This document shows, one piece after another, positions 1,205-50,000 of a stretch of DNA of 64,000 nt. The notes beneath the pieces were generated by a model. The model saw nothing but the letters and a program-made list of their open reading frames with translations, ran no database searches and was not told the origin of the DNA. Both the position numbers and the translations under genes were made by a program. Where the stretch lies: the NCBI RefSeq assembly GCF_006345805.1, contig NC_042998.1, forward strand, positions 172,236,001 through 172,300,000. Direction: 5' to 3'. The DNA is from Octopus sinensis. Lineage: Eukaryota. Each line of letters opens with the position of its first letter. Positions within the stretch are counted from its first letter, which is position 1.

Positions 1205-2703
1205 TTATCATCGTTTAACGTCCGCTTTCTATGCTAGCATGGGTTGGACAATCTGACTGAGTACTGGCGAACCAGATGGCTTCACCAGGTTCTAATCTAA
1301 CCTGGCAGAGTTTCTACAGCTGGATGCCCTTCCTAACGCCGCCCACTCCAAGAGTGTAGTGGGTGCTTTTACATGCCACTGGCATGAGGCCAGTCAGTTG
1401 GTACTGGCAATGGCCACGCTCAAGTGTTTTTTACATGCCACCTGCACAGGAGCCAGTCCAGCGGCACTGGCAACGACCTTGCTCGAATGTTTTTCATGTG
1501 CCAGTAAGGCGATGCTACTAATGACCATGTTTGAATGGTGCTTTTTACGTGCCACCGGCACAGAAGCCAGTCAGCTGCTCTGGCAGCGATCACACTTGGA
1601 TGGTGCTGTCAGCGCTCTACTGGCATGGGTGCCAGTCATCAAATTTGAAAATTTGCTTTGATTTTGATTTCGCTTGTCTCAACAGGTCTTCACAAACAGA
1701 GTTTAGTGTTCAATGTAGGAAAGGTACCTATAAGTGGGCTGGTTACACCCCTGGCATAGCCCACAGGTTATGGTTATCCTCATCCATTCTCACCACATGA
1801 CCAAACCAGCGCAGTCGTCTCTCTTGCACACCACATCTGATGCTTCTTAGGTCCAACTTTTCTCTCAAAGTACTTACACTCTGTTGAGTATGCACACTGA
1901 CATTACACAACCATCGGAGCATACTGGCTCCATTCCTTGTGAGCTTACGCATATCCTCAGCAGTCATGGCCCATGTTTCACTGCCATGTAGCATGGCTGT
2001 TCATACACATGCGTCATACAGTCTACCTTTTACTCTGAGCGAGATGCCCTTTGTCACTTGTAGAGGTAAGAGCTCTCTGAACTCTCTGTTTATTGCCCTG
2101 AGCATCTGCCACATACAAAAACTATCTTCCCAGTTAGCCTTCCTTTGATGTTGTTGCACCTCTTATGTCTCCATAGCTTACACTGGGCACATCTTATAGA
2201 GTTTCTACCTACACCTTTTCTACAGATCGAGCAGGGCCATCTACCTGAAGAAATTTGTGGTTTGTCTGCCTTCCTACTTATTAGGACTTTGGTTTTAGCT
2301 AGGTTGACTCTAAGGCTCTTCGATTCTAATCCTTGTTTCTACACCTGAAACTTCTCCTCTAGTTCTGATAATGACTCAGCAATTAGAGCAAGGTCGTCAG
2401 CATAGAGGAGCTCCCAGGGGCATCCTGTCTTGAATTTCTCTGTTATTGTCTGGAAGACTATGATAAATAGGAGGGGGCTGAGGACTGAACTTTGGTGGAC
2501 CCTACCTCTACTTGGAATTCTTCACAGCAAACCCTCACCTTACTGACGGTGTCCCTGTACATGGCTTGCACAGCTCTCACTAACCATTCCTCTATCCCTA
2601 GTTTCCTCATTGACCACCAGATAAGGGATTGGGGGACCCTGTCAAAGGCTTTCTCCATGTCAACGAAAGCCAGGTACAGAGATTTATCTTTGGCTAGGTA
2701 TTT
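1205..2703 (-). mobile_element. 5'-truncated RTE-clade LINE (RT, PHD-like finger, 3'UTR with tandem subrepeats, GAT-type tail)
   Basis: YLAFVDMEKAFDRVP, WELLYADDLALIAES, MLHGSETWAM, RRLRWFGHVVRM. The 3'UTR (1205-~1700) is the sequence repeated as short tails across the window. Confidence 0.92.
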
Positions 2704-2859
2704 AAAATTTGTCATGCTGATTTCAAAACTGCAGTCAATTTTCAACTATCACATCAGGTTTTTTTTTCTACAACTTAATCTCTGAATAAGTACAATTGTG
2801 TTGTTTTTTCATAAGTAATAGGGCTGGTCAGCTGCTTTCATTATTTTATAACATGGAGG

Positions 2860-4804: not shown

Positions 4805-5000
4805 CTTACAGTGATTATCATCATCATTAATGTCTGTTGTCCATACTGACATGTGTTGCATGGTTTGACCAGTGCTGGCATGCTGGAGAGCCTCACCAGA
4901 CTCTAGTCTCCTTTGGCACAGTTTCTATGGTTGGATGCCCTTCCTAACACCAGCCACTTTACAGAGTGTACTGGGTGCTTTTACGTAGTTCTGCCATGAG
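4805..5000 (-). mobile_element. RTE 3'-tail fragment
   Basis: atcatcatc...ggatgcccttcctaacaccagccactttacagagtgtactgggtgcttttac, homologous to 1205-1370. Confidence 0.75.
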
Positions 5001-6530: not shown

Positions 6531-6569
<39 letters not shown>

Positions 6570-6714
6570 CCCAGTGCACACTAAAAAAGTTGGTGTTAGG
6601 AAGGGTGTCCAGCTTTAGAAAACATGTGAAAGCTGACACTGAAGCTTGACAGCTTGCTGGATTCTGTCACACCCTGTATGGGAAAGGGATGTTAAATGAT
6701 GATGATGATGATGA
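6570..6714 (+). mobile_element. RTE 3'-tail fragment with (GAT)n tail
   Basis: gttggtgttaggaagggtgtccagc...gatgttaaatgatgatgatgatgatg. Confidence 0.75.
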
Positions 6715-7714
6715 ACAATGAAAGTATGAATATTGTTAGGGATAATATTAAATTCATGGAGTCATTAACTTGTTTTCTCACTAATATGATTGAACACTTG
6801 GGAAAATGGTAACCATTCTTTTAAAATTGTGTTGCAAGCAAGCAACAACTTTACTAAGTCACCTGGATGAATTCAAATAGTATGAATTACACAGAAATGA
6901 TACTTAGATCAACTTATGTTAGCTTTCATTTGAACAACTAAACATTTCTGCTGATAAACAATTCTTGAGCTAACAACTGTAGTGTCATTGTCTCTTTTTC
7001 TAAATTTCTTGTTTTCATAACTTCTTCCTAATTTGGGGTTAGAACCCTGTTTTTATGGCAGTGTCCTGTCTATTTCTTTGTCTAACACAGTGGCTATCAC
7101 TGGAGTGTGTTCTCTTTAAAACATTGAATGCAAAAATGTTTATCATTGTTTTTAAATCTCTCTCTTTCACCTTTCTCTATTTATCAAACCTCTTTCTCTA
7201 CCTATTTAACTTTCTATCAACCTTCTAAATAGCCAGTCATGTTTATCCCATAAATGGGATAGACATGACTGGAGATGTCTATCATCATAACCTGGTCACA
7301 AAACTATTGAATGTAAAATGCCAAGGTTTCACTAACTTTGATTCAAGATTCCTTCAGCTGCCTATCTACATACACACTTCATTCACTTTTATGCTTGCCT
7401 GTATAACTACTTCTATCAAGAATAGATCATCCACCTTACTTTTTAACATATACTTTCTGTGCTGACATGACTTGAACAGATTGTCAAGTTGGAGTCCTTG
7501 TGTACAATTAGGATACTCCTCAGCAGATTGAAGGACCACATCTTGCTTAAATGTTTCAGTTTTGGTTTGGTTTCTATGATTGGATACCATTCCTATCTCC
7601 AGTGACTTTACAAAGTGTACTGGATGCATTTTATTGTGACATGAGCAATAATAGATCCATATATGTATATGTTGTGGCACAGCACCACATATTTAGTAAG
7701 TTATAGTGGTTGAT

Positions 7715-7830
7715 TATGTGAATGAGTGAGCATATATGTACACAGGCACTTATATGCTCACTCATTCACATAGATAGGTAGGCAAAATTTGTATGTACAC
7801 AGGCACTTACAAATTCTGCCTACCTATCTA
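7715..7830. repeat. Tandem double hairpin with identical 14-nt loops
   Basis: Arms 7715-7736/7751-7772 (22 bp perfect) and 7771-7793/7808-7830 (23 bp, 1 mismatch); both loops are TGTACACAGGCACT. Confidence 0.97.
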
Positions 7831-8090
7831 CCTTTTTATTTTCACGAACATGCTCTAAATAATTGTCATATATAAAAACCAGTCAGTGTGTTTACAATGG
7901 TATGTAAGTATACATGTATTTATATATGGAGGTTTTTATAATTATGAAAATTGTGAGCATTTACTGAACTAAGGCCTCACTAACTGTAATCTGATATTTA
8001 TAATAATTGTATTGACTGTGACTGATGAGGCCAACTACTGGTGGGACTTTGAAGTAACTGTCAATAAAATGTGTGTGTGTGTGTGTGTGT

Positions 8091-8403
8091 GCAGAGGCAT
8101 GGCTGTGTAGTAAGAAGTTTGCTTCCCAACCACATGGTTCTTGGTCAAGTCCCACTGCATGGCACCTCTGGTAAGTGTCTTCTACAGCCTTGGGTTGACC
8201 AAATCCTTGTGAGTGGATTTGATAGGCAGAAACTGAAAGAAGCTTGTCATGTGTGTGTGTGTGTGTCTTTGTGTTTGTCTCTCGCCACCGATTGACAATT
8301 TGTGTTGATTTGTTTACACCCACTTAACTTGGAATTCATTTGACTAAAGATCGTCGGGATGGTACTCCAGTATGGCCACAGTCTAATGACTGAAACAATT
8401 AAA
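8091..8403 (+). mobile_element. tRNA-derived SINE (octopus-type family 1)
   Basis: A-box-like ggcatggctgtgtag, B-box-like region, central ggatttgataggcagaaactgaaagaagc, (GT)n, and tail ggtactccagtatggccacagtctaatgactgaaac. Confidence 0.85.
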
Positions 8404-8889
8404 ATATATACATATATATTCTCACACATCTGTAATTTTAAATAATACTAGCTTAAAGTTCCCATATGCTCTTCATGCCACCAACCCTTTTGTAGTAAAG
8501 ATATTTTGTGATGTTTGTGTCCACTTCTCTACACTTACATGAATTGGGTGGATCTTCTTTTGCACATTTTCTTGTCACTTGTTACAATTATTTTAACTAA
8601 TTATTTAACTTTTGTGGAAGGTTTAACAAAATTTATCTTTCTGGTCATGTGTGCCTAGTTCCTCATGCACACTGACATTATACATTTAGCTGAGTATACT
8701 TGCTTTTTATATGTGATGAATAGGCGATAATGACGCAGATAAACAAACCTGCTTGGGTTAGATATGCAACATCATCATCATTTGACAGGAGCTGACAGAC
8801 AGAAGACCGCACCGCGTGCGCGCATATAATCTAGAAAACAAAGACTGAAAATTTTCAGGTACTGAATAATCAAGTATAAATATATAGAT

Positions 8890-16007: not shown

Positions 16008-16138
16008 GCATGTATTGATGACAAAATTGACATGGTGAAGTTTCTTGTTGATAATGGTGCTGATGTTGATGTCTGTGATAATGAAGGTTGGACACCTCTT
16101 CATGCTACAGCTTCATGTGGCTTTACTGACATAGCACA
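16008..16138 (+). CDS. PPP1R12A: MYPT exon 2 (131 nt, phase 0 to 2), ankyrin repeats
   Basis: tttttttctaatttcAG|GCATGT...GCACA|GTaagt; ACIDD...GWTPLHATASCG. Confidence 0.96.
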
Positions 16139-19100
16139 GTAAGTTGCTTTATTTACATCACTGAAGTAAATTGAAGTTTACATTGAGTTTTAGTTGCTGA
16201 ACTACAGTCATATACAACAACCTTTTCCAAATTTACTACAGTCAAAGGATTGTCTCTTGATTAAATGTTCATTGTGCATGCTTAAATCAGTCCAACTTAA
16301 AATAAATGCTGTTTCCATCATTTCACAGTTTGTTGGTAATGAGGAAATATCTAAACTTTACAAACCTATGTATGGTTATGTGGTTAACTTGGCTTTAGAA
16401 CCATTTGGTTATGGATTCAGTCTCACTGTGAGACATTTTGGGGCAGTGTCCTCTATAGTCTTGGGCTTACTTAAGTCTTGTAATTGAATTTGGTAGATGA
16501 AACTGTCATGTGTGTACATGTCTCTTTGCCTTGACATATGCTTACAGTAAGCAAACATCATCATACAAGTTGTATCACTTGCAATCTCTTGTGAAAACAT
16601 GGCCAGCCTTTATGCTATGTTTATATTGGAAGGACTAAAGAAGATATTGACTTGCTTGGAAACAAGTAAGAGTTGTCAACAGGAAGGGTATCTGGTTATA
16701 GAATTTTATCTGATCAATGCAAGCATGAAAAAAGCTAACATTAAAATGATTGAATTCTACCAATGGTTGTGTGGACATAAAATGGGTAGAAAGAATAAGA
16801 GAAAATCATTTCCCTCCTTCATATATGTTTCAGCATGTTGCTAAACTTAGCATATATCAGAGCCTATCAGAGTAGATTATCTCATTGATTTTACTTATAC
16901 TTTGTCTCGATGCTTTATAGTGAACTGCAGTTTGGTTTCATTTGTGCTTTTCTTTTCATTGTTCTTTCTTATTTGTCCATTAATAACTAACCAGTTGATC
17001 AACATGTTGGAGCATGAGTTTCTTTGTGGTATTGATTCGTATAAGTTTGTCAATATTTTGTTATTTCTTTTGGTTTTTCATATTGTTGTCTTTTTTTTTA
17101 TCAATATTTTTCCTTCAATAATGCTTTAAGCAAATTTATATAATTGTTAACACGTAAATATTTTACTGGTTTAAATCATGAGATGTATATGTTTTTTTTT
17201 TTTTAAATAAATAAATCAAATTGTCATTTTTCTTTTTATAAGTATCAAGGTCATGAGATTAACATCAATCTACTGCTTTGCTAATGAAAGATTAATGGTG
17301 TCACACATACACTGCAATGTTACATAATAGAAGAGAACTGACATAAAATGTAACCATATATAGCATTGGTTATTTATTTGAGAGTAGCACAGTTATAGGT
17401 AAATGTAAAACAATCAGAATATACTGACCACCTGCATATCTAAATTGTCTTGTTATATGGTCTTGATTACTAACGGCAATGTCTTATTTGCTGCTGTTAG
17501 TTTTTATTTCTAGCAGGAATTCTTAGACATATTCTTGGAAATCATTATTAAGATGATGTCTGGAACATTTTAAAGGGTTCCTATACACAAAATTATAAAT
17601 ATGTAGTGAAAAGGGATCTTGATATTGTATATCCTCTAATTGTTAGACTAATTGAACGTGGTATTAAATGAATGGTTTTTATTTTGGACTTGAATCCTCT
17701 TTGAACAAAGGCAACATTTTTTAATTAAGTTAGGTTTGTTTATTGACAAATACTGAAAAAGTTTTTAAAATAATTTAAAATGGACTTCTTTACCTCTTAG
17801 AGAAAATGCCAAAATTGTCTTTTATTTTAAAGCCAGTTTTGAATTCAAGTAAAAAAAAAACCCTTTTTTTTTAAACTTTTTTTGAAAATTGCTAGATATG
17901 GCAAAGTGTTGTAGAGTGTCAGTTAAAAATGTCAGTGGTTCAAGCAGAGTGCTGTATTGACAAACTAGATTGAACCACCTAGCTGTGGCTTGTATTGCAC
18001 TGTTTTCAGGAGTAGTTATGTTGGTTTGTCATGATTCAGTTCAGGTAATCTTTGGATAAGGTCATGGGAGACTACATTTGATTGACTTTTTTCATTTATT
18101 AGATCTAGTATCTAGTTTTGGTTACAAGCTGCTTATAATGATTGGTTGGTGTACAACTCTAAAAAGACATCACCCACTCAGCATGAGCTGACTGTATTAT
18201 TCAACTTAAAGGAAATCTGTGATAACTTGTTTTTATAAACAGTATTTGTCATATCATCCTCATTTGCCAAAAGCGAAAGTATGACTATTTTGGTTCAGCT
18301 TTTATAGTGACTAAGAATACATTCATGTTGCAGAAATTGGGGAAATGAAACTAAATAATTAAGGTTGGGAAAGCAGTTCCAGAGAGATGTAGATTAATTC
18401 TTTTGTTACTATATTTGTAATGAAACGCACTGCCTATTTATTTCATTACAATATCCTTTCATTTGAAATTAAGAATTTTGAGGGCTTTATAATAAAGTAA
18501 CTGATTTCATCATTATTAAGATAATGTCTGGAACATTTTAAAGGGTTCCTATATGCAAAATTATAATGGACAGTTGTAATTTAAATGTTTTAAAACAGTT
18601 GGTTTGTATTAAAAAATCAGAGGTCAGTTGAGTTTCAGAAGTGTTTATGAAGAATTTATAGATATACTTGATGGCAGCATTTATACATCTTAGTAAAACC
18701 ACTGGAGGATGCATAATTAATCCTCTTTTTCATCATAATACATTCCTCATCTTGCCTTTATATAACCTATGCCTGCAATGTTTCAGTTATTCTTAAAATC
18801 AGTTGTGATAGCCAAAGAGAGGACTTAACTCATACATAAAACCAAAGTACTAAACCTCTTTAAATCACGAAAAATTATAATATAAACTTGGGAAATTTTC
18901 AATTGACTAGATTTGTTGCTTGTGATTTTGATATTCCTTACATGCCTTTCACCTGTTATAGGTTCAGTGTATAAGTACTATTTTGTTTTATATAAAATCC
19001 TAAGTCCCAGTATTTATGAATGAATGGCATCTGTGTATTACTAATGTGAATAAGGTAATAAGCTCTCATTTTTCTTAATCCTCAAATTTGCAATTTCTGA

Positions 19101-22100
19101 CTGTTTATTCCGATCATACACAAGAATGAAATAAAACTTTCAGCAGTTATGTGAGGAAACTGACAATTTATATTTCTGTTTAACTATTTTGAAAGCTTAT
19201 CTTCATTATTTCATATTTCTTGGGTGATGCTATGACATTTTTATTCGATTGTTTAGTCAGAGAGGGAAGGATTGCATTTATTACAATTTGTTGTTTTTGA
19301 GGATCTTTGAGACAGGTTAGCAGGAGAAATTTATCCTCAAACTGAAAACCAGGTTGGAATGCTTGCAGTAGATTAAACTCTACTAAAGGCATCCAATGAG
19401 CAAATGGTGGTGTTAAACAAATGATGGATTAACACTTATCCAAGAACTCAGAACACAGTGTTGGAAAAAAATGCTGCAAAACATCTTGTCTGACACTAAC
19501 AATTCTTTCAGTTCACTGCCCTTGACTGGTATTTCATTTTATTGATTTCAAAAGTACGAAAGACAAAGTTGATCGCAGTGGGATTCAAACTCAGAGTATA
19601 GAGAATCAGAGAAGAAACAACAAAGGCATTTTGTTCCATGTTACAGTAGTAGTTATGATACTGTACAAATCAACCTTACATTTGTAATTTAATTAAACTG
19701 TGTTGTAATTGGTATATTCTGATTGCCTCCAGTTATATATTTCTCTATGCTGCTCAATATTCAGTTTTCTTATTTCTACAGCCATTCATTACTATTGAAG
19801 AGGAGTTTTTATTTCATTTCTCTTGCTCTGATAAGATGGATAATTTTAGCAAGCTTTACAGTCTGTCCTGTGTGTGTGTGTCTACATGCAAACTAGGATA
19901 TCATACATCTTGCCTCTTTTTAACAGAGCAGGTGACTACCTCTTCTGCTCACCCTATTATTTGAACATCTGTCTCATATAACTTACAACTCTTATCAATA
20001 AAATATGCTAATGACTGATGTTAGTGTTAAGTTACATTATAATTTTATCAATTTCTAATTGTTTAACTGAAAGAAAGTTTGAAAATGTTGAAATCTTAGT
20101 TTTTATGTGATTATCAAATTGAAAAAAACTATTATTACAAGATGTATGCAGATGCATTTAATAAATTGAACTTCAAGTGAGACGAAAATAGTTTTTGTGA
20201 ATAGTATGAATTTTTTCCAAGATAGCATAATTGCAATTACATGAATGCGTTATCCTGCTAATACTAGTAAGGAATAGTTAAAAGAATGTCCAACCATTGT
20301 CTTGTACCTCAAGATATAATGATAAAGCTGTAAGAAATTTGAACTGAAGAGAATGTGCCCCTTGGTTTACAAAACCCTTCAATGTATTGCCTCTGATATG
20401 CAATAAGACCTTAAATATTTCAAATAGTTTTTATTATAAAAATACAGTAGGACTTTTATTATGTTCATTGAATGGCTATAGAGGTCCAGTGAAGTAAAAT
20501 AGTAATCTAAGGGGTCCATCGGTAAAAAAAAAAAATGCTGAGAACCACTGCTTTAAATGAAATAGTTGGCCATCTGATAATTGACTAGTCTATGTTAGTA
20601 TTGGTATTATTGTTACATGGTTGTCCCTGATTGAATAGATCTACCTTTGATAAAACATGTCTTGTCTTCCTTGAAAATGTGTGACCCTAACACTACATCA
20701 GAAATAAATTTTATAGTAGGCAAAGTTTTGGGTTTTCCAGATTTTGAACTTTAATGGGTTAACCATCCTTTACACTATAGAAATCATATATATACACTCA
20801 AAACTTCATTACCTTTAACTGCAGAAAGCAGTTTTATATACCAATCAATCATTTTTGTAATATATCAAGCTTGGAATAACATGACTTGTAGAAAATACTT
20901 CCTATTTTTTTAATAGATATTTAACATCATTATTGGAATAACGATAGAATTTAGTTTTGCAGTCAAAGAGTTAACATGTATTTTAATCATTAGTTGGCAC
21001 AGCTCTTTTTGTTGTCTTTTATGGTACCTCAAGGGAAGTATTAGGAATGGTGGGGATATGGTTTAAAATTTTTGTGTATCATCATCTCAAATGTTTTTAA
21101 AACTGATTATCTGAAAGTCAGATATTGTCAGTTCTAACAAGAATGTCCATGCATCTGTATTCTTGATATGCATGCTTGATTTAAATTGAACAAAAAGCTG
21201 GTAATTAACTTGAACTATTGCTAAAGTTGTAACAATGTTATAAAGCAAATTTTAGTTGATATTTCATCATCATCATCATCATTTAACATCCGCTTTCCAT
21301 GCTAGCATGGGTTGGACGGTTCAACTGGGGTTTGGGGAGCCCGAAGGCTGCACCAGGCCAGTCAGATCTGGCAGTGTTTCTACAGCTGGATGCCCTTCCT
21401 AACGCCAACCTCTCTGAGAGTGTAGTGGGTGATTTTATGTGCCACCGACACAGGTGCTAGACGAGGCTGGCGAACGGCCACGCTCGGATGGTGTTTTTTA
21501 TGTGCCACCGACACAGGTGCCAGACGGGTTCAAGAAATTCCTTTCAAACAAGGTAGTTCATTTTCTTTTCTTTTTCAAATGAAAATTTCAGTTTCTGCTT
21601 TTGATGTTGTTGACCATGTATTCTGACCACTGACAAGTTTAGTTTTATACTGTCTAGATTCTGGTAATTGACTACAGTAGAGATGGGTAGTTATTTTTGG
21701 TCAGAGCATGAGGGTTGGTGTTTGCCTTCATTTTTTATTGATGGGCAAACTGGCAGAGTCAAGATGTTTTTTTTTGTTTTTGTTTTTTTTACCCCTTAGT
21801 TCAATTCCCACTGGGATCAACTTTGCATTTCATCTTTTGAGGGTTAATAAAAGAAAGTACTGGGGTTATTAAAGAGGCATATGCCAGCATGTGGTTGTTT
21901 CAGCTCTCTCAGAGTATATGGTGGGTTTTTTTCCCTCCTTCATTGTCTAGGGTGAGTGAGAGAAATAATGATTTTAGGATGCTGTTGTGTTCAGGGCTGG
22001 AGTGGCTGTGTGGTAAGTAGCTTGCTTACCAACCACATGGTTCCGAGTTCAGTCCCACTGCATGGCATCTTGGGCAAGTGTCTTCTGCTATAGCCCCGGG

Positions 22101-22161
22101 CCGACCAATGCCTTGTGAGTGGATTTGGTAGACGGAAACTGAAAGAAGCCTGTCGTATATA

Positions 22162-22212
<51 letters not shown>

Positions 22213-25200
22213 TTGTGTGTTTGTCCCCTTAGCATTGCTTGACAACCAATGCTGGTGTGTTTACATCCCCGTCACTTAGCAGTTCGGCAAAAGAGACCGA
22301 TAGAATAAGTACTGGGCTTAAAAAGAATAAGTCCCGGGGTCGATTTGCTCGACTAAAGGCGGTGCTCCAGCATGGCCGCAGTCAAATGACTGAAACATGT
22401 AAAAGAGTATATATATATATATATATATAACTGGATGTTTGAGGTAATTTTTTTATGTTGTAGTATGGATTTTTAGGGTTGAAGTTAGATGTATCAACAA
22501 ATGAAGCATCTTCCATCTGCAGGTGGTCTTTCGCCCCTTTTTTTTTCTTTTCCATTTTTGTTTTTGTGTATGTAATCTATGGGCATGGTGTTATATAGTG
22601 ACTACATCATTTTGTGTTCCCTCTAGTATAGGGTTGATGCACAGGAATTAGTAAGGCTCTGGTAGAGCTGACATAATCTTTGATTAATATACCGTTTGTA
22701 CATAGTATTCTTGTTGTTTCCTACTGTTGGCTAAATGTGGTACCAATGAGTGTTCTCAGTATGTTTGTGCATTATTTTACTTCATTTACTGTTTTCACAT
22801 CAGTTATGGTGTTGTATGTAACCCTTAAGATTTTCTGTCTTCTGTGTCTGGGGTATGTTTGTTTTCTCATGCCGCTAGTAAGAAAAAGGGATACAGTGAA
22901 TTCTAGTAGATGCTATTTTGTTGTTTGAAGCTGCAGGTTTCTATGGTTCAAATAGTTATATAACTGTGTCTAGTGAGTAGTAGGGAGATGTATCATGTTA
23001 TCTGCATATGAGGTGTGTATATATTTTGGGGAAGGTGTGGGAAAACCATGTAAAGAGATAAAGACTGAAAGAGTTGGCGAGAAATGCAGATTTTTGTGGA
23101 AGTGCTAGTTGAGTGTTTTTGTACAATACATAGGCTCTGTGACCTAGCCAGCATTTTGTTTCTTTAACGGTTCAGCATTCAAGGTTTATGAATATAATTC
23201 CCACAATATTCAATATTTCTTTAAGTTTTTGTTAGATGATTGTTAGGGAATTTTGCTGCTAATTTTAGCAGACCATGTTATTGTGGAGAGGCACTTTGTT
23301 GGCTCATCTTTCTGTGTCCATACTCTTAACAAGATGTTAATTTATCAATGTCTGTTGTGAATGTCTATTAAGTAGTTATTTCATTTACCTATTAACTTTG
23401 GCTACACTTGTCCTACTCCACAAAAGATGAAAAAATCATCTCTGTATAATAATGGCTGATATAAATATTGGTTGCTTTGTTAGTTGATTCCTCTAGTCAT
23501 CCTTTACATCGTATAGAAAGTAAAAAAGAAGAAAGAAAGAAAGGAAAAATACAGTGAGAGTTAACATCAGGTTGAGGGTAGATAAAAGGTTTGGTGATAT
23601 GCAAGGAGTAGAGGAATGCTACACTCACACACACACACACATACACACAATGAACTGAAGAAGAGGAGAGGTAGTAAATGAGAGTAATTAGGGAGGAGTT
23701 ATTCAAATGAGAAACTTGTTTTAATTTGAAGATAAGTATTTTTATTTGGAAAATTAGTATTCATTTAAGTACCAGGAAATTTGATAAATGTTAAATTACA
23801 ATTATCATATATCAGTCATAATTCCTGATACCACCCACAGTAGAAAAAATATATCTCTCAAGTTACATTTTGTCAAGATGTTGCTGATAGTTAGCTAATG
23901 AATACAGATTTATTGAAATCAGCTATCCTCTTATTTGATAGGTATTCTTTTAGAGAAGATGCAGAATTGGTTAGATGTTCATTCAACCTTTGTTTGTGAA
24001 TTGCTTGTAAAAATGTAGGGTTGCTTTCAAACCTTGATGTGGTCTATTTTAATCTTGTTTTAGTAGATTTCATTCATAGGATTTGCCTCACAGATTTGAA
24101 TCCTATTAGTTGTATCTTTCTTATTAGAAAATGTACTATATTGTCAAATTAGTGATTAATTTTTTAAAAACTGAGTTGTCTTTAAAGTTTTAGTGTTTTA
24201 CTGTAATACTAACTGGCATTATTATTATTATATTACTGCACAATGCAATTGTACCATCCTGTTATTATTAATACTTATATAATGCCAGTTTTACAGTAAG
24301 TGAATAGTATGAAACAATAATACATCAGGCATTCATTGTTATCAGGTTTTTGCTCTTTTGTATACCATTATTGCACACCAAAATAAAAGCATTAGCAATT
24401 GCACCCGTAATTGTTTTCAAACTCATTTAGTCAACATTGTCTTTTAAAATACGAGATTGAAACAGTTATTTAGCCATAATGTATGCTTTTGAAGCATTAT
24501 CTCCTAATTGAATTAGAATCAATTCATGTATTTAAGCAGTTTGTAATTACAGTCTACAAAATGTAGCATTCTTACAGCTCACTGTTTTCACACTCATCAC
24601 CTTGAAATAATCTGAAATGTGTAATTTGTCTAAAGTGAATATATTTGTCTTAGAACAATATATATTTTGCCAAATTTTCTGAGATATTTTAAGACTTTTC
24701 AGAGATGATATAAAAATATATTTCTATGATAAACATAATATTTGAATAAACTATATTAATGTATTTCTGTGCTATACACAGAAACCACAGAAACATACAA
24801 GTACTGTTTATGCATATGAAATAGTTTCAATAGATTTTCTGGAACAAAATTTAAGTGTCAACATTTCCCACCCAACAGTCATAGAATAATATTGCTGTTA
24901 AGTACTTTTGAAAGATTAATGCTATTAAATATTTTGATAAAATCTTTTTCCCAGATTGCTTGGCATGCATTACATAACCAAAACTAATAGTTTGCTCTCT
25001 GTTGTAGGCTTCACGTAAAGCTATTTTCTACTTTATCTGTTGGCTGTGATTCTTAATTTAACCTGTTGAGCACTTATGCATGGTCTACAACATAAAATCT
25101 CTTATCACATCTCTAATAAATTTCAGTAATTTTTTTATATTCACTAATATCTTTGCAAAAGTACTTCTGGTTTCTTTCAAACTCAACTAGGCTTTAGATC

Positions 25201-28200
25201 TTGATAGTGCCCTTTTCAGTAATCTCAAAGAAAGAGCCTTGGAACTCGCTTCTGCCCTCACCGAATTCTTCAATCTCTCCTTTCCTCTCTTTCTCTATGT
25301 ACATACCCTGATCTTTGGAAACAGGGTTGCATGAAAGGTAACCCTTCTTAGCTTGCCAGCTACTGTTCTTTGGCATTTGACTTCCAATACTTCAAAGGTG
25401 ATGGAACGAGCTGTTAAGAACAGCCTTCTCTCATACCACTAGCAAATCTACTCATATATTCACATACCCTCAAGAAATTTGTTCAAAATGTTGTTGCCAC
25501 AGTAATCATCAATAAAACTTTTAACTGTGTCTGGTACATGAATCTCATGTTATAACTGCTTATCTATCATTTCTTCTATCAGGTCATTAAGAATGAAATG
25601 TCTGATTTTGAACTGAAAGTTTATTTTATTTCAATAAAAAAGCAATGCAGTTAATGAAAGTATGCACCTAAATTATCAACACTATTTTGCCATTTTATTG
25701 GTAGCTTATTTATGCCGGCAGCGAAGAATTCTGGAGAGCAAGAAGTGATGAAATCACAAAAGACTGTTTTTGCATCTTCTTCAGATTTTTTTTCTGATGC
25801 ATATGGTGGATGACAGAATACTTCCAAGTTTAGTTCCTGTAGCTTGAGTAGTGTTCTTTGTTCAACATGTGGTCGAGCATTCTTAGAAGAGAATTGGCCT
25901 GTGTCTGTTGACCAATCTCAGTTGTTTAATTGCAAGTTCATTCATCATTTCATTCTGTTGGTTGATGTATACATTTGCTGTAATTGACTTACCAGGTCTC
26001 CTGAAACTGTTGTGGATGACACCAGTGCTGGACTACCAAACTGATATCATTAGCTTTTTTTGGCAAATATTCGTTTTGAGATTGTGTTTTGGCACTTTGT
26101 CTCTATCCAACCACCATGCAGAATACTTGCTATTGTTGAAAAGAATCCCTTTTTCATCACACATAAGAATACAATGCAAAAATGGTTTGTTTTTATGCTG
26201 TAACAGCAAGTTTCAAGATGACTTGTCATTTGATGCTTGTGCAGTTCGTGTGGTACCCTCTTGTCCAGCTTCTTTACCATGCTGATTGGTTTCAGATGGT
26301 CCAATACAGTTGGAATTGAAACATCAAACCTTGCTGCTAACTCGCGTGTAGTTTGAGATGTATCTACTTCCACTACAGTTTCCACCTCATCATTTTCCAC
26401 CTCATCATTTTCCACTTTGGCTTTAGGTCTACCATGGGGCTGATTTTCAGGAGTAAAGTCACCAGACTGGAACTCCTCAAACTCTTGACGTACAGTGTGC
26501 TCATTCGCCACATCTTCACCAAGCACATCATTGATGTTTCGAGCTGTCTGGGCTGCGTTGGTTCCAAGACGGAACTCATATTCATAAACAACAAAAATTT
26601 TTGATCTATCCATGGGTTCACAAAAATTGATTTATAAGAGAAAACTCGTAATATAATCAGACATCATGAATTGCATTTCAAAAAGTGATGTAACTCCTCA
26701 GTGTTGTAAAACAAAGAATTGTGAGGATAAAACATTCGAGTTAACAACTGTCAAACTTGGTGCATCAGAAAATCGGACATTCCATTCTTAATCACCTGAT
26801 ATTACTACAGATACCTCTACCTCTTCAAGCTGACTAATTTTCTGCCACTTTAATTAAACCACATGTGACTAACTTTTCATTCTTCATCTCATTGCCCACT
26901 CTCTTTCCAGTCTTCAAAATCAGCACATGCCCACTACATCCAAAATATTAGTTGTTTAGAATTCCCCACTTGGACATGTTTCTCAGCCTATTGACTTGCA
27001 CCATACAATTGAAGTGGTAGGTTAACAGGATCAATTGCACTGATCTTAGAGGGGCTACAAAGGCCATGTGCATAGCCCTTACTTCCTTACCAAACCAGTA
27101 AGTGGGGAAAAAAAGGGTTCGACCATTGATTTAAACATATATTCCAATGCTCTAAAAGGTATTATAATCCATTCAACATCATATCACTTCCTTGGTTCTA
27201 ACACTCAATATAGTTCATACAATAAATACGTATTGTTTACTTGCTCAAGTGTTCCTTGACAATATATCTCTATATTCATCTGAAACACTGCAAATTAAAA
27301 TAAATTGATGATTCAGCGGTGGTGCCCCAGCATGGCCGCGGCCTTCGGGCTAAAACATTTTTAAGGATTTTAAGGATTTAAGGAATGTAAGTACTGATAA
27401 TGTGAAGTGCAGTATAGCAGTTTTAGGATCCAACAGAATCATAATTCATAACCTTTAAATTCCGTTTAAGATCTTCAAACACTTTTGAAGATCTTAAATT
27501 TCACCAGTGAACAAGTCATTTCTCTAATGTCAATATCCTCCACTCGGCTCCATAATTTCATGCAGCTAAACATGATTATTTGTTAATGAAGGGAAAAAAG
27601 CAATATAAAAAATAAGTACCCAACACCTTTTAAATCATACTGACTTAAAGTTACTGCCCATTCATAAACAATACTTAATATCACTACTAGTTAAGCACAC
27701 CAAAGACTGGTGTGCAGTGTACCAACTCTGTTAAACTCTGATAAACTGTTAAAATCTCCATTGACATAACCTGTCAAATGAGATAGCTTTCAATTCATTC
27801 TTGTCTTCTGTCCTTGTTAGAATATGCAGGTTCTTCTGTCACTTTACTCTGCATATGTAGCATCCTATGCCTTCTGACCTCACAATTATATTTTCCTATG
27901 ACTTCAGATATTTTGTCTCTTGACAGACATCAAATCTTATGCACCCAACTTGGTACAAACAAACTATTCAAGATGTCTTTTGCACCCCCATGTCCTCTGC
28001 ATGCACATACATAAGTACACCTGTTCATGCAAGGTGGAATTAGAATATTAAGTTTCTCTACCTTGCACAACCTCCATGTTTAACTGTTACATACATGTCT
28101 GTATATTAGGCAAATGCCAAACACTCATACATTTGAAAATAGCTATGACATCCATGTGTTCACCAAACTCTAATTTGGATATCAGCATGCTCTCACCATC

Positions 28201-31200: not shown

Positions 31201-34200
31201 TTATGGTCACGGGAAGCAACCTTGTTAGTGTCTAAATTCTACAGCAGTTGTATGAGCCAGTGCTTTTCTCAGACATGAGTACACAGGATAGTTGCTTGGG
31301 AAGCTCCAGTACTAGACCATGTATGATATGCTTATGCATGTTGGAACCCCATTGCATTGTTTTTCCTAGCAGGGGACTACAATGTTAAGATACCCCTGGT
31401 ATTAGCTTTCATATTCTTACTTTCTAGAAAAGAAAAAGAAAAAAAATTGAAATACAGTTGTCTCAGACCTTCAATTTTTCATCCCTAATGGCAAATCGAC
31501 TCATTGTAATACTCCCCCATCCAAACTTTTGCCGATTAACATTTAAAGATGCTGGCTCAGCAGTTTCCATGGTTTCTGGATCATACATTATATTTGCTTG
31601 TTGGTAAAATACCTACAATCCAGTTTAAAGAGTATTCAATTATAATTTAAATTTCTACAAGTTGTTTGATCTTGGTTGGACCTGATTTAGCAGATAGACC
31701 TTTGATGGAAAAAAAAAAAAAATACCAGCAATACCCTCATATCTTATATTATGTTATACTGTGTAGTTTTAGATGTAATTTTTTGTGGTCAGATGTAACT
31801 CAAGTGAAGTTGGACTGTTGTTTCTAACAGGTCAAGCCACCATGTAATGCTCCCCACCTTTTGGCTTGTGTAACTGTTTCAATCAGTCTGTGCCAATAAA
31901 CATTTGATTTCATGTTTTTTTTCCACTCATCTTTTTATATTCTCTTTTAACTTTCATCACTCTGAGCCATTGCTAATAAAAGTTTGAAGTCAGTCAGTTT
32001 GTGTGACTTTCTTAGCTCTTTAACATTTAAACTGGCCATATCTAGCCTAAATATTCTATTATATAGGTTGTACTGATGCATCTCAAATTATCTTATTTTC
32101 TGTTTTAAAAAGACACTAACTTTAAATATGTCAAAACATATTTTCAAATTATCAGAAGTTTTTCAGAGTTGTTTACAATTTGTAATGGATGAGCTATTTA
32201 CTGAGAGTTTGATAGATCCAATGTCAACAATTTTTATAATTGTTTTGTGAAAGTGTCATTCATGAAGCATAGCATATAATAATCACCGAGGTATTAAGTT
32301 TTTATAGTTTCATTCACAAAAGCAGCCTTGTTAAATTTTTATTCTCACTCCTTCCTCTTGCATTCAATTTCATATACAATTGTTTTATGATGGATCATAA
32401 TTGACATCTGTTTTTGATGAATTTTCTCATAGATTCCAATTCACCATTTTTTGTTGTTTTTACTTGGTTTTTTGCTCATGATGTTTCACATGGTTTTAAC
32501 TGGACCATTTCAGGATTGGTTACATGTCTTTATTACCAGCTGCCTTGTTGGTCATGGGGTTAATGTGTTTATCCTGTAACCAGAATTAAACAAGATTAGG
32601 AGTCTCTACTTCATGTCAGTCATGCTAATTAATTATTTACATCTATTCAGTTCAAAATAAAAATAAAATAAGTAATTTTGTCACTCGGAGGTTTGGTAGT
32701 AATTATAATTTGCACATAGTTTGATATTGTTACAAGGCTTTCTATTTTAATGCAAGCAATAAACTCCCAGCGAAGTGAGCATTCAACTAATTCTTTTGAC
32801 TCCTAATACCCTTCAGTAAAGTAAGAACCTGCATATGCCATCTTCCCTCTATCATTTATAATACACACTCATATGCGTTGCATACCACTAATTATGGGTA
32901 GTGAAAAAAGTAGAAAAAATATTTGGAATAAATGCACCAGCATTTCTTTAGGATATTACAATCCATGAGAAGAGTGTTTTAGTTGGATTTATAATTTTTA
33001 TATGATACATTGAGAAAGTTCATGAGACCAAGACAAAACAAAAGTAAGTTCAATAGTAATTTATGACCTTTACTAGTGTAGACCATAAAAGTACACCTGT
33101 TAATTTGACATTGTGGAAATCACGTTCTTTTTTTTTTTTTCTGGAAAATCTCATTTTGATAATGATGGTGTAGTTAAAGAGGTATTTAACTTTACTATTC
33201 AGTTACTAGTGATGCATAACATTATTGTGTTGTCACAAGAGAAAGTTTATATATTGAGCATACTTATTTTAGTTTTGTTTTAAAAACCCATTTTTATTTT
33301 GCATTTCTTTTTTCAAAAGAAAGAAAATCTTCAAATTTTTGTATTTGAGCATTAAACATTCAGGTTCTTGTAATTCTTTTTAGTTTGTGTGTGTGTGTGT
33401 TTCTGTTTTCTTTAAACAGAATTTTAAATTTTCAGCAAATCAAATTAAAATGTTTTAAAATCATTTCATTTAGGATTTTGTATTCTATTAATAAGTCTCA
33501 TTTTACTGAACTGCTATGTTAAGGTTTATAAACAAACCACTTTAGGCTGTCAAATCCTGCAGAAAGACACATGTACAAGATCAGTTTCTACCTACCAAAT
33601 TCACTAACAAGATATTGGTTGACCTGAAGGTGCCATGCAGTAGGACTGAACCTGAAGCCACATGGTTGTAAGGCGAACTTCTTAACCCTTTTGATACCAA
33701 CCCGGCTGAGACCACCTCTGGCTCTGTAGTACAAATGTCTTGTTTTCATAAATTTTGAATTAAAATCTACCACCAAACCGTAGTCAAAATTTGTTCCTAA
33801 CACCAGCTTAATGATAACAAAGTTATTTTACTAATTTCTTTGTTATATTTAAAGTTAATTGAAAGAAACACAGAGCATCTCAGAATAAATACGGTAACAA
33901 AAATTTAAGCACATGGCCATGCCTGTGCCTAATGGATCAAAGTAGTGAGACTGTGCCAATGGTTGCATGAAGCTTTTATATTGATAGTTTGATGTCAAAC
34001 ATGAAGTAAGCTGCACTTGGCTAAGCTCATACACTGAAATTTCATAGGGCAAAAATTGTTATGAGCCTGCGCATAGATAGCATTAAATGTGTCATGGCTA
34101 CCAATGCCTCACTTATATTCTGATTGTTTCCTATCAACAATTACAAACAAAATTTTGTTATCGTTCGTTAGACATTTATTGACATGCTGTCTAGTTTGGA

Positions 34201-40500: not shown

Positions 40501-43500
40501 TTCCATGTTGGTATGGGCTGGACAGATTAACAGGATTTTATGATCCCTAAGAGCTGTGTCATACTCCTGTCAGTTTTGGTATGGCTTCTACAGCTAGATG
40601 CCCTTCCTAACACTAGTCACTTTAAAGCATGTACTGGGTGCTATTTTCATGCTACCAGCACTAGTAAGGTTACCAGGTAACTTGTAAGGCCAAAAAAAAA
40701 AAAAAAAAAACAGGAAAGGGAATAGGATAAAAGCCCCTTTGACTAAGTGGCATGGGGCATTGGTTTATGAATAATAGTTTTATAGAGCAATTAAGTTTTA
40801 CATATTTGCTAAATGAACTACATTAACTTTGACTAATTGTGTACTCTTTTAGCTAAAACTCAACTGTAATTTTGTTATGATGTCAAATTTATACATTTGT
40901 TTTTCCCTTTCAAAACTATGAAAATGTTTCTTGTGGAATGTTTAGAAAGTTAACATCAACTAGTTTTATTAAAAATTTTTTTTTTTAAATTGTGATCTAC
41001 AATATACCCATTACATAATGCAGTGAAAGTATGTTCTACATGTGGAAATTAATCAGTTGTAGTGTCTGCAAAATAAACATTAGTGGCATTTATTATTTAT
41101 TGTTTTTTTGGGTAGGGCTGAATGGTAGAGTGGCAGATAAAATGTTTTGTAGGTTTTTTGTCATGTCTTTTTACATTCTGAGTCAAATTCTGTTGGAGTC
41201 AAATTTACTATTCAACTTTTCAAAGATGATACAAGTACCAATTATTCGGGTCTATCAAATTGACTATAAGAAAGGAGGTTGGAGATTGTCTGTTAGAAAT
41301 AATTTTTGTTTTATTCTAATGTTCGTTGTAAAAATGAAATTTGTGTGGAGAGTAGGAAGGACCAAGCTACATACGTGCACATTTTTCTCTCGTAAATGTC
41401 TAGAGTTTAAATCCACCCCCACCCCCCTTTTTTATGACGCTTTTGAATTTTGCTGAAACTAACAAATGATTACAAGTCATTTTCTAATCTGTTTGGATGC
41501 TTAAAACTACTTGAAATTCCATAAGAAATCAGGAAATATTTTCTGGCCAAGCCCTGTTGTTTTTGTATGGTTATTGTTTTAAATTGTCTTTAAACTCACA
41601 GCTCTGACAATGAACTTTGAACCTTTTAAAAAGCTTATACAAGTTGACACTTGAGATCATAATGGTGAAGTTATTAGGAAAGGATTTTTTTTTAATACTT
41701 TTGTTGGTGTTTGAAAATTTAGTCACAAGTATTTGTTTAATAATCCTATTAAGAATAGTCTCTGTTCTATGATAGCTTAAAAGAAATAAAAGCTCTCGAC
41801 CATTATTTTATGTAAGAACCTTTATAGCCAAGGTACTACTCCCTCCGTGTTTTTTTACTGTGAAAAGTAATTTAGTATATTTTGTTAGTAAAATGCTTAC
41901 AGAAAGTTAATGGACAAATAACTAGAACTATTTACACATTAGGTTACTTGGCTGAACTGAACTGTTAAGATTTTGTTTATTTCCTGTTGTAATCTATTTC
42001 TAAGCCTGCACCTTTCATATCCTGCTCTGTATACTTTTCAATCAGAATCGGACTTGAGCTGCTGCTGAAATTCTCTTAATGCTACTTGTTGAAATATTTT
42101 GTGTTATTTTTTTAATGAAAATATGTACAGGTTGTTAGTCTGCGTTCTGCTGCAGGCAGCAGCATATTGTGTCCATGAGTATTGCCTTTTTATAGAAACT
42201 GAAGATTAAAATTTTAATATCAATTTTAATCTGTCTAGGAGTCAATGTGTAAATTATTAATCTATTTCAAGGTACTAATACTTTTATAGAAGTTGACTGG
42301 TGGGCTGCTAATCTTTGTAGTGAGAGGAGAGGTTGTTAATCTCTCAGGTGTTAATAGTGGTTCTATGGCTAATTTCTCTTGGCAGTTGTTCGTTCTGTTG
42401 CTAATCCTTCTGAGAGGTGTTGGTGGGTATCTTGCTAATTCTAATGTGGCTTCATTCCAGGTTCTGTCAGCTCAGCTGGTAGATTTAACTAACTACTTTG
42501 CCTAAGATTATTTTCTTTCTGTATTCTACAACAAAGTAGCTGCCAATCTCTCATAACATATTCTTAGTTGTCTGTGCTATATATGCTATATGTTATGTAC
42601 TATAAATTTTATAATGCCACACTGTCCAACAATAAAGAAAGTATAGATATAATTGGGCAGAGTGAGCTGAAACCTACCAACAGTTATTTATATATCATGA
42701 TAGTGATGAATACAATATTGTTTATTCAAAAGTAACTCTTGTTATAATCTTGTTTATGTTTCTTATGTTTATATTTAATGTTATAAATTTTTTCTCACCT
42801 TCTGTGCTACAGGTGAGTTCTGTGTTATTTTTCTGAAGATATATTTTCGATTGGTAGGTTATAGAAACTTTTTAAATATTGTCTATAACATGGCATTTAT
42901 GATCACTTGAGAAAGCCCAATTATGCTTATGTTAATCTTCATTAGTGTTTTATATAGTGTTTCATTATAAGATAGATCTTTTTTCCTCTATGTATGTAGC
43001 CTTTCTGATGTACTGATGTAAGAGAGGGATAGAGATTTAAAATAAATTTGTCTTAAAATAGTTAGGGTCTAAGGATTACTGTTCTATTTTTCATGAGTCT
43101 AAGGATTACTATTTCTGTTTTAGATATTGCAATATGGTTCTGTTGCTTATTGGAATTATTTACTTAAGATGTTACAAGCCACTTAGAAGAAATTCCTCTC
43201 TTGTGAGAAAGATGGGGAGGGAAGCTTTCCATGAGTAATTGTAATATGGGGGCATGTGCTGTAACAGCGCATCTCTGCATCCACCATGTATTGGTGATTT
43301 CCTACTGCTCCTGGTGGACAACATCTTTGTACCACTCAGGTGACAACCCTCCAACCCAGGGGTTCTCAACCATTTTTAATCTATGGACCCTTTTGATCAC
43401 TATTTTATTCTGGTGGACTCCTAAAGCCATTCAATATTCAAAAACTGGTTTTATAGAAACTGCTTTCAAAATTCTTATTTTGTTTTTCACATATTAAACT

Positions 43501-47067: not shown

Positions 47068-50000
47068 GGGCTTCCACACTGTTTCTAGTTCACTCACCAA
47101 ATTCACTTACAATAGCTTTAGTAAAAGATACTTGCCTAAGGTACCATGCAATGGGGCTGAACCTGAAACCATGTGGTTGCAAAACAAGCTTTTTAACCAC
47201 ACACCCATGCCTGTGCCCAAAACATTTAAGTGGCGTTCAACAACTAATTTTTTCCTTTGACTTCTAGCAAATTATGAAGAAACTTTATAGTAGTGTGTGA
47301 TTACCAAATTTTGACATTGAAACAGCTTCCTATGACTTTAATTTGTAGTTGTTCTATGATAATTAAAAAAATAATATAAAAATGAGAAAATGCGTCAGAA
47401 CAATTAGTTTCATCTAGCTGAAAACAGTAGTTAGACTTTTCGATAACATTGCAGCCATAATCATCATTTAATGGCATCTTTCTGTGTAAATGTGGTTTAG
47501 ATGCCTGTTCAGTATTATCATCACTAATTTTGATGCTATATTGACTTGTCTCGAAAGGGCTCATTGGCCTCATCATTTCATTCCATGTTTTCTTCGGTCT
47601 TTAGTTAATGATGATTTTTTTTGTAATCCTCACCATTCATTTATTTACATTGCGTGTCAATAGCAGTATAGTTGTCTGTTGCAAATATTGGCTGATGCCT
47701 TTGAATGTCTCTCAGAACTGCTCTCAACTCACTTATGCTCTGCCTTTCAGTCAAGTTTGCCAATCCTTTCTGATGATTTTTATATTAGATGATATCTATA
47801 TTTATGAGTGTAAATTATATAGATATCTATGAATTCTCTCCCTCTCAAACACACACTCACAAAAGAAACGTATGCTAGAATGCTAAACTAAAATTATTAC
47901 TTAAAGAAATTTCAAATATGAAGTATTAAAATTTTTCTTATTTTAAAATGTAAGTATATAATTGATGTATAAACCATTATCTACAAGGGTGTACCAATAA
48001 AAATTCAATGTTTTTAACACCTGTGCTTCATTAGAGTTTTATACCTGTTTCCAAGCTGTTTGTAAAAATGGAATTTTTTTAATTATATAATAGTATTTGT
48101 ATGTTTATGTTTTGGGTTAGGAGCAATAAAAATGTCTTTTATTACAACTATCACCACTAGTTTTGTAATGGGATTTTGAAATTAATCTTTGGATTATCAA
48201 TGCTAATTAGTCATTTATCATTTTTAAAGTGTTATTAATTGGTTTTATGGTAATCTGTTTTGCAATTACTGTCAGAAACACCTAAACATGCATTACATTA
48301 ATTTTACCCTGTTAGGCAAGATAGGGTTTGAAAATATTCCCTTATGAATATTTAGAGCTACTTTTTCTGTTTTTTAACATGGCACACTTTCTTCTGTTAA
48401 TCACTCAATTGTGAAATGGCACTGATACTATATTCAGTTAGGTAACATTGTTTTCCTTTGGTTTAGAGCATTGACTAAAGGGGAGTTTAAAGTCAAAATC
48501 TTGTGGGTGGCTGTTCAGGATTTGTATTTCGTAGGCTTCATCTTAATAACATGTAATTTTATGTTCTTTTTGTATTAATGCCCATAAGAGAAGAGAGGAA
48601 ACAAGCTAAACAAACCTGAAGTTTCTTTTCTCTGCATAAATACTAATGTTTGCCTTTCCTATTATCACCTGTTGTGACAGATTAGTAGAAAAGAAATAGA
48701 ATGAATGTATGTCTCACCCAATACCTGCATTATATCCATTATATATACATATATATATATATATATAATGAAATGTAAAAGCACCTGCCTCGTGGAAGCA
48801 ATGTGACCAGTCTTGCATAAATGGTATGTAAAAAGCACCTTTGGAGTGTTGGGCCATACAAAGACATCAAGCATTGGGCCTCATGGAGGCAATGTGGCTG
48901 ATGTCAGTGTTGTGTAATTGGCACCTGTGCTGGTGGCATGTAAAATGTACCTTTCAAGTGTTGGGTTTCACAGAAGCAATGACAAATAACTGAGACCTTT
49001 GGCAATATGCCATGCTTGAGAAGGATACTGATTAAGCCAAGTGAAATTGTAGTCGTCGTAGATACCGGAGTCATACAAGTGGCACCCGTGCTGGTGGCTC
49101 ATAAAAGTACTTGTTACACTCTTGAAGTGGTTGACGATAGTAAGAGCATCGAACTATAGAAACCATGCCAAATGAGGCTGGAGTCTAGTGCAGCCCCTCA
49201 GCTCACCAGCTCTGGTCAAACTGTCCAACCCATGCCAGTATGTACAACAGATGTTAAAAGATGTTGACGATGATTTTTAGATATATATATTTACATTGAG
49301 TCATCCCATAAATATTGCGGTTTTTTTTGTGCTACTTTTATTTTTCATAATTAAGATAAAGTTCTTTTTCAATCTAAAATATACCTTTCTACAATGCTCT
49401 TCCATCTTTCTGGTAGACTTGCACAGTCCATGTTCTAAAATTCACTTGTACGTGATGAAAAGTACTCCAGTACTGTTCTGACCTCATCTACAGAATTTAT
49501 GTTTTCTGTCCAAATGATTTTGAAGACTATAGAATAAATAATCAGATGGAGCAATGTCCAGCGAATATGGTGGGTAGGGCATTGTTTTCCATTCTAACTA
49601 CTCCAGCCTTTGGAATGTCATCCTTGCTGTATGTCGCCAAGCATTATCCTGGTGGAAGAACACCTCTCATCTTGAAACCAAAGATGGTCGTTTTTCTTCT
49701 AGCTCTGACTTGGACTGGTTGAATTACTAAATCCAAGCTTCTCTGCTAGTTTCTCAACAGTTACAATGGGATTTTGTTCCATCAGGGTTTGCAGGATGTC
49801 CCTGTCAAGCTCTACAGATCTTTCAGGATGAGGTTCATCGGCTAGGCTGTAGTTTCCAGCTCCGAATTTCTGAAACCACCATTGACACTAGTTTACACTT
49901 ATTTTTTGATCCCCATATACTGCCTTAATATTCCTTGCACTTCCCATTGCATTGTTGGCTTTATCGAACTCCTAAAGCAAAATATGCCAAACATGCTCCT

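Follow-up and report, generated by a model that had tools for sequence, protein, structure and literature searches.

Pol theta makes flank-templated inserts through reiterated priming, extension and dissociation, and snap-back of an end gives rise to reverse-complement inserts (PMC5068794). These inserts average ~10 bp, the copying error is ~1 in 30 bp and snap-back represents a minor class in C. elegans (PMC5068794). In SD-MMEJ, snap-back is commonly primed by TA/AT repeats (PMC5728401), and templated extension has been described both in cis and in trans (PMC4912351). Fill-in of staggered breaks leads to small tandem duplications (PMC8355091). Template switching makes perfect hairpins in a single event, often within introns (PMC10710096). 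Template-switch mutations (TSMs) are frequent in introns, can invert segments in place and are raw material for miRNAs (PMC10710096; bioRxiv 10.1101/2021.04.15.439925). Octopus A-to-I editing concentrates in hairpins within introns and 3'UTRs (PMC9699675).

The window, by which we mean the whole 64-kb stretch of DNA that was analysed, is AT-rich (~33% GC), carries many microsatellites and is without long ORFs. At 7715-7830 it contains a twin hairpin with the order a-L-a'-b'-L-b, whose parts, identified by reading of the sequence and with a repeat finder, are listed in Table 1 together with the other features of the window. Hairpin 1 (7715-7772) has a perfect 22-bp stem. Hairpin 2 (7771-7830) has a 23-bp stem with a single A:C mismatch at 7785/7816, which becomes a G:U wobble on the minus strand, where the predicted fold is fully paired. 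The original prediction had described both stems in these terms, together with identical 14-nt loops flanked by TA and a TA at 7771-72 shared between the hairpins, and this description was borne out in each respect. Arms a and a' are exactly reverse-complementary, TGTACACAGGCACT forms both loops, and the TA common to both stems is the last TA of a' and the start of b'. Because the TA on each side of the loop is repeated as well, the exact direct repeat, TATGTACACAGGCACTTA, is 18 nt and not 14 nt long; its copies at 7735-7752 and 7792-7809 are 57 nt apart. The predicted folds place two pairs (plus strand) or four pairs (minus strand) inside the 14-nt "loop", so that the terminal loops are effectively 8 nt and 4 nt, respectively.

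Table 1. Features of the twin hairpin, the host gene and the repeats. Positions are those of the window unless L001 (O. bimaculoides) is given.
Feature	Position	Strand	Remarks
Arm a (X)	7715-7736	+	TATGTGAATGAGTGAGCATATA; 5' arm of hairpin 1; left flank of putative ancestral site
Loop copy L1	7737-7750	+	TGTACACAGGCACT; with flanking TAs forms the 18-nt direct repeat 7735-7752
Arm a' (X')	7751-7772	+	exact reverse complement of arm a; putative templated tract 1 of insertion
Arm b' (Y)	7771-7793	+	putative templated tract 2; reverse complement of arm b except A7785 (faithful copy would be G)
Loop copy L2	7794-7807	+	identical to L1; with TAs forms the 18-nt repeat 7792-7809; putative templated tract 3 (direct copy), or equivalently a TSD-like duplication
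Arm b (Y')	7808-7830	+	3' arm of hairpin 2; right flank of putative ancestral site; C7816 faces A7785
PPP1R12A-like ankyrin-repeat exons	16008-16139, ~50445-50567, 54965-55126, 58427-58579, ~60300	+	introns 2-34 kb
Exon 2 of PPP1R12A/MYPT1-like gene	16008-16139	+	tblastn; polypyrimidine tract and AG acceptor, GTAAGT donor
O. bimaculoides PPP1R12A-like retrocopy	L001 10001-10589 (CM046618.1)		195 aa, 589 bp, intronless
Mariner, internally deleted, ~1.2 kb	25577-26801		33-bp terminal inverted repeats (91% identical), TA flanks
Mariner transposase N-terminal ORF	26050-26613	-	
SINE-like repeat	8078-8419; 22003-22422, 47121-47219, 33628-33684; L001 978-1376		copies 77-85% identical
~80-bp interspersed repeat fragment	7556-7632 (+), 6560-6638 (-); copies 40570-40647, 54602-54652, 50871-50935, 21377-21438, 4922-4976		
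Reverse-transcriptase fragment of decayed LINE-type retrotransposon	~1900-2800	-	motif ...LAFVDMEKAFDRVP...
Inverted copy of loop 14-mer, 12/14	7493-7506	-	230 nt upstream of hairpin 1; flanks without further similarity

The twin hairpin is far beyond chance. Based on base composition, a perfect 22-bp stem enclosing a loop of 3-40 nt is expected 8e-7 times per 64-kb window, and stems of at least 14 bp were absent from 57 of 60 windows simulated under a first-order Markov model. Outside low-complexity sequence there were four perfect hairpins of at least 14 bp in the window, two of them being this pair. The predicted folds were similarly extreme, at -65 kcal/mol (z = -9.7) for the plus-strand RNA, -76.7 kcal/mol (z = -13.4) for the minus-strand RNA and -40.3 kcal/mol (z = -10.9) for the DNA.

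Additional short perfect hairpins, with stems of 12-15 bp and loops of 3-7 nt, were observed at 58159-58191, 27465-27498 and 53566-53593 in the window and at 6357-6393 of L001 in O. bimaculoides. Such hairpins are far commoner than chance (0.007 expected per 64 kb for a 15-bp stem), and their excess hints at a general palindrome-generating process in this genome. A scan of 84 kb returned no other abutting hairpin pairs, although it had little power because the query pair itself escaped its settings.

Removal of 57 nt, in any register across the 18-nt repeat, leaves the simple arrangement a-L-b. The hypothetical ancestor would have been the 59-bp sequence TATGTGAATGAGTGAGCATATA-TGTACACAGGCACT-TACAAATTCTGCCTACCTATCTA. 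The 57-nt insert can be read as three tracts, namely 7715-7734 in reverse complement, arm b in reverse complement (interrupted by the mismatch) and L copied directly, with the exact register ambiguous as the 57-nt segment slides by 18 nt. The insert has no untemplated bases and, apart from the single mismatch, matches sources no more than ~40 nt from the site. At each of the new junctions (L/a', a'/b' and b'/L) the sources overlap by exactly TA (2 nt), with the bases differing on either side. TA accounts for 11.6% of local dinucleotides, and suitable primers are plentiful because TA is so common locally; for the same reason, some of the TA junction microhomology could be coincidence. The single mismatch corresponds to a copy divergence of 1.7% (95% CI 0.04-9%), and may just as well have arisen as a copying error in the course of the event.

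Based on these sequence features, we consider that the twin hairpin is probably a one-off mutational scar, i.e., a 57-bp templated insertion into a-L-b, and not a gene or mobile element (probability roughly 0.55). Such a scar would be an example of a known mutation class in an unusual symmetric form. The original prediction had also proposed a repair scar, in which a staggered break duplicated L and each end then copied its own flank. That proposal fits all the sequence features, with a', b' and L templated and the joins at TA, but it is not proven, and its staggered break is not required since copying in trans from the other end can suffice to duplicate L.

The ancestral state, the enzyme and the order of steps are what we infer. 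The most likely route would be a double-strand break at or around L, followed by microhomology-primed end joining of the Pol-theta type (SD-MMEJ). L would reach both ends either through fill-in of a staggered break or through copying in trans by the right end from the left end. The 3' strand of each end would then snap back, priming at its own TA (two bases past L), and copy ~20 nt of its own flank to give a' and b', after which the two extended 3' ends would anneal at a TA and be sealed. Three template switches at a replication fork would lead to the same product.

Several properties of the insert are consistent with Pol theta and SD-MMEJ. The inserted bases can be traced to sequence near the junction, in direct or reverse-complement orientation, and the 2-nt junction microhomology lies within the 1-4 nt expected of these pathways. 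One error in 43 copied nt also fits the ~1-in-30 error rate of Pol theta. Against a Pol-theta scar, 57 bp and two ~20-nt snap-backs exceed typical inserts. Pol-theta inserts are typically <30 bp and usually accompanied by a deletion, whereas none can be inferred here, size not being a strict criterion.

A single switch-and-return from a-L-b cannot yield the structure because a'b' is reverse-complementary to b+a, two arms that are not contiguous in a-L-b; at least three switches are needed. One template switch would be enough only if the ancestor had already been a-L-b-a-L-b. This ancestor is the intermediate of a two-event history, in which a 57-bp microhomology-mediated tandem duplication (TA junction) would have been followed later by an in-place inversion of the 43-bp b-a, with TA at both junctions. 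In a variant, L'-b-a-L' would have been inverted from an ancestor with an oppositely oriented loop. Inversion of 7751-7793 in silico indeed produced a perfect tandem repeat of a-L-b, and just two ordinary events are required, as small tandem duplications are common (PMC8355091) and in-place inversions, including hairpin-loop inversion, are documented for template switching (PMC10710096). We nonetheless consider the two-event history unlikely, as it offers no reason for inversion breakpoints exactly at both L boundaries, or for their symmetrical position around the duplication junction, with arm lengths of 22 and 23 nt. The products of the two models are identical, and the window sequence therefore cannot separate them.

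The structure was unique in the sample, and closed gaps can produce local inverted or duplicated insertions, which raises the question of whether an assembly, gap-closing or polishing artefact has been superimposed on a true genome of a-L-b or other simple sequence. However, a graph-walk would need an a'/b' join backed by just two shared bases, and a computational copy should be exact, but stem 2 has a mismatch. In addition, Ns or other signs of a gap are absent nearby. We regard an artefact as very improbable.

TA borders each hairpin on either side, as in Tc1/mariner-type MITEs, and the unit or each hairpin might be a copy of a multi-copy foldback or MITE inserted at TA, with the shared loop as family sequence. 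A mariner copy is present in the window with several interspersed repeats close by, and the check for copies covered 84 kb of a multi-Gb genome. The flanking TAs are ambiguous as a TSD because they belong to the stems. Against a repeat family, no further copies of a, b or L were found in the 64-kb window and 20.6 kb of O. bimaculoides DNA, a result that excludes only copy numbers roughly >1e5. The arms are unrelated and the interior identical, whereas in transposon families it is the terminal repeats that are conserved and the interior that varies. When the two ends of the 116-bp unit were compared by eye as inverted repeats, 5/12 positions matched; the unit lacks terminal inverted repeats and so is not MITE-like. 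The inverted terminal repeat (ITR) of the resident mariner, TCAGGTGATTAAG..., is unrelated to L. Together, these data make a repeat-family origin quite doubtful, and the statement in the original prediction that no known repeat class explains the structure holds across the 84 kb examined, in which the arms and the loop are single-copy.

Other sources of the loop or of the whole unit were considered and rejected. No paper with the loop 14-mer was found in the literature, in either orientation or alphabet, and the loop 18-mer had no matches in viral contigs. It had six matches in metagenomes, in which 0-7 of 20 flanking positions were complementary, i.e., chance level. With no literature or viral match, and with metagenome matches that were without flanking inverted repeats, the loop was rejected as a known module or adapter. 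Derivation of the loop from the mariner ITR was rejected as well, given that the ITR is unrelated. We also dropped hAT/RAG-type hairpin opening (P nucleotides), which would give loop-less palindromes, and Helitron insertion, whose termini do not fit. A lox-like recombinase site, which has conserved arms and a shared core, is the reverse of the arrangement here, no recombinase being present, and parvovirus-like T-shaped termini require an outer stem, of which there is none; these were likewise dropped.

Several interspersed repeats lie close to the hairpins (Table 1). The nearest SINE-like repeat begins ~250 nt downstream of the hairpins and recurs at the O. bimaculoides retrocopy locus described below. 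The ~80-bp repeat occurs a short way upstream of the hairpins as two oppositely oriented copies separated by ~1 kb, which may be independent fragments or mark both ends of a single element. Breaks might have come from a transposon end situated 83 nt from the putative scar. A paralogous "empty" copy of the site reached through these neighbouring repeats was rejected because the homology of the 7556-7632 and 8078-8419 repeats stops short of 7633-8077. A search with the mariner transposase returned no octopus proteins. Loop matches with at most two mismatches are expected 0.47 times window-wide and ~0.004 times within +/-300 nt (a post-hoc estimate), and the inverted 12/14 loop copy may be due to chance or be an older local inverted copy.

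Six-frame translation and tblastn identified five ankyrin-repeat exons of a PPP1R12A/MYPT1-like (myosin phosphatase targeting subunit) gene on the plus strand. Exon 1 had no tblastn match anywhere in the 64-kb window, and orthologues indicate that it presumably lies upstream of the window. With exon 1 having no match in the window and exon 2 lying downstream, the hairpins lie in intron 1, on the sense strand of the gene and ~8.2 kb upstream of exon 2. These findings, in which the best matches were to Octopus bimaculoides, supported the earlier proposal of an intron in a coleoid, and together with the SINE-like repeat shared with O. bimaculoides they make an octopod source plausible. The best protein match to the exons was an intronless "LOW QUALITY PPP1R12A-like" gene of O. 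bimaculoides (84% identity), and this 589-bp gene represents a processed PPP1R12A-like retrocopy. At its cut-off of 1e-60, which would hide short fragmentary gene models, the exon search yielded no octopod parent protein encoded by a gene with introns. Exact look-up of ten ORFs around the hairpin site gave no match, nor did the concatenated ORFs of 7265-7765 when searched for homologues.

At this position the inverted repeats would be passively transcribed within intron 1 of the PPP1R12A-like pre-mRNA, and the RNA would be predicted to fold into two 22-23-bp hairpins, possibly attracting ADAR. A scar origin would also be compatible with function, either as a small-RNA locus (newborn miRNA or endo-siRNA pair) or as an ADAR target under selection. 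The hairpins are very stable and lie in a transcribed intron, in the sense orientation. The lone mismatch is A:C on the sense strand, which is a context favoured by ADAR. New miRNAs have been documented to arise from intronic template-switch hairpins (PMC10710096), and octopods have gained many miRNA families and concentrate A-to-I editing in intronic hairpins (PMC9699675). Given this concentration of octopus editing, it is plausible that the sense-strand hairpins are passively edited by ADAR.

Against a functional small RNA, the stems are 22-23 bp, compared with the ~35 bp preferred by Microprocessor (PMC10710096), and their perfect pairing is siRNA-like and not miRNA-like. Both hairpins persisted in a 351-nt fold, with no basal extension there or in a 146-nt fold, and stems of this length without such extension are too short for canonical Drosha processing. 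A ~35-bp pri-miRNA stem with single-stranded basal flanks is thus not present at the locus. The site is not at the intron ends, and the hairpins are therefore not a mirtron. Searches of Rfam gave no match at gathering thresholds, and hence no curated family; below threshold there were generic hairpin matches only, to unrelated families on both strands (15-33 bits versus gathering scores of 55-170). The arm sequences were absent from the text of the PMC9699675 supplement, but so were the let-7 and miR-1 controls, and this absence is uninformative because that text contains no miRNA sequences. The pre-miRNA geometry put forward in the original prediction was consequently weak: the ~58-60 nt hairpins with ~22-nt arms stood, but there was no basal stem and Rfam similarity was sub-threshold only. 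We consider a functional small-RNA or selected ADAR locus highly improbable, and infer an absence of function.

Taken alone, the locus is probably a single, neutral event in a large intron. If the interpretation as a templated-insertion scar is right, it is an unusually legible natural case of multi-step microhomology-primed template switching, with 57/57 inserted bases traced. One event would then have placed two perfect RNA hairpins, proposed raw material for new miRNAs and, in cephalopods, for ADAR substrates, in a transcribed intron. The value of the locus rises only if the pattern recurs genome-wide or small-RNA or editing data show use. We also speculate, as a long shot, that the symmetric form may be a recurrent, undescribed repair outcome in cephalopod germ lines, seeding perfect intronic hairpin pairs that ADAR and the small-RNA machinery would use. 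One possible source of this form is double snap-back at staggered breaks, such as those of aborted LINE-endonuclease activity. If this speculation is correct, a mutational process would be linked to the growth in editing substrates and miRNAs seen in coleoids.

Comparison of the twin hairpin with known systems revealed partial likenesses to several of them. Like Tc1/mariner-type MITEs, it consists of short foldbacks with TA at both ends of each hairpin; unlike them, it has unrelated arms around an identical interior, no other copies in 84 kb and no similarity to the mariner ITR. Like animal pre- and pri-miRNAs, the hairpins are ~58-60 nt, with ~22-nt arms, intronic and on the sense strand. They differ from pri-miRNAs in that the lower stem of ~11 bp is absent, the stem is 22-23 rather than ~35 bp, the pairing is perfect and there is no Rfam family. 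They are also far shorter than hairpin-derived endo-siRNA (hpRNA) loci.

A length of 14-18 nt is within the range of LINE-type TSDs. As in staggered-break fill-in duplications and TSDs, the 14-18-nt L is directly repeated around inserted DNA (PMC8355091). In contrast to TSD insertions, the DNA between the L copies is 39-43 bp of inverted flank copies, and not a mobile element or a simple junction, and there is no evident endonuclease target motif.

The likeness to TSMs lies in the generation of perfect inverted repeats from unstructured sequence (PMC10710096; bioRxiv 10.1101/2021.04.15.439925). TSM hairpins are usually single, whereas here there is an abutting pair with the same loop, and three switches would be needed, or a prior tandem duplication and one TSM.

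Compared to a typical Pol-theta insert (~10 bp), the insert here is long, at 57 bp. Both ends would have snapped back over nearly equal lengths, and the break-site sequence is duplicated, not deleted, in which the locus is unlike typical Pol-theta/SD-MMEJ products. It is like Pol-theta/SD-MMEJ insertions in that the insert is wholly flank-templated, with reverse-complement tracts as in snap-back (PMC5068794, PMC5728401, PMC4912351), and in having a very short microhomology at every junction, with several rounds of priming and dissociation.
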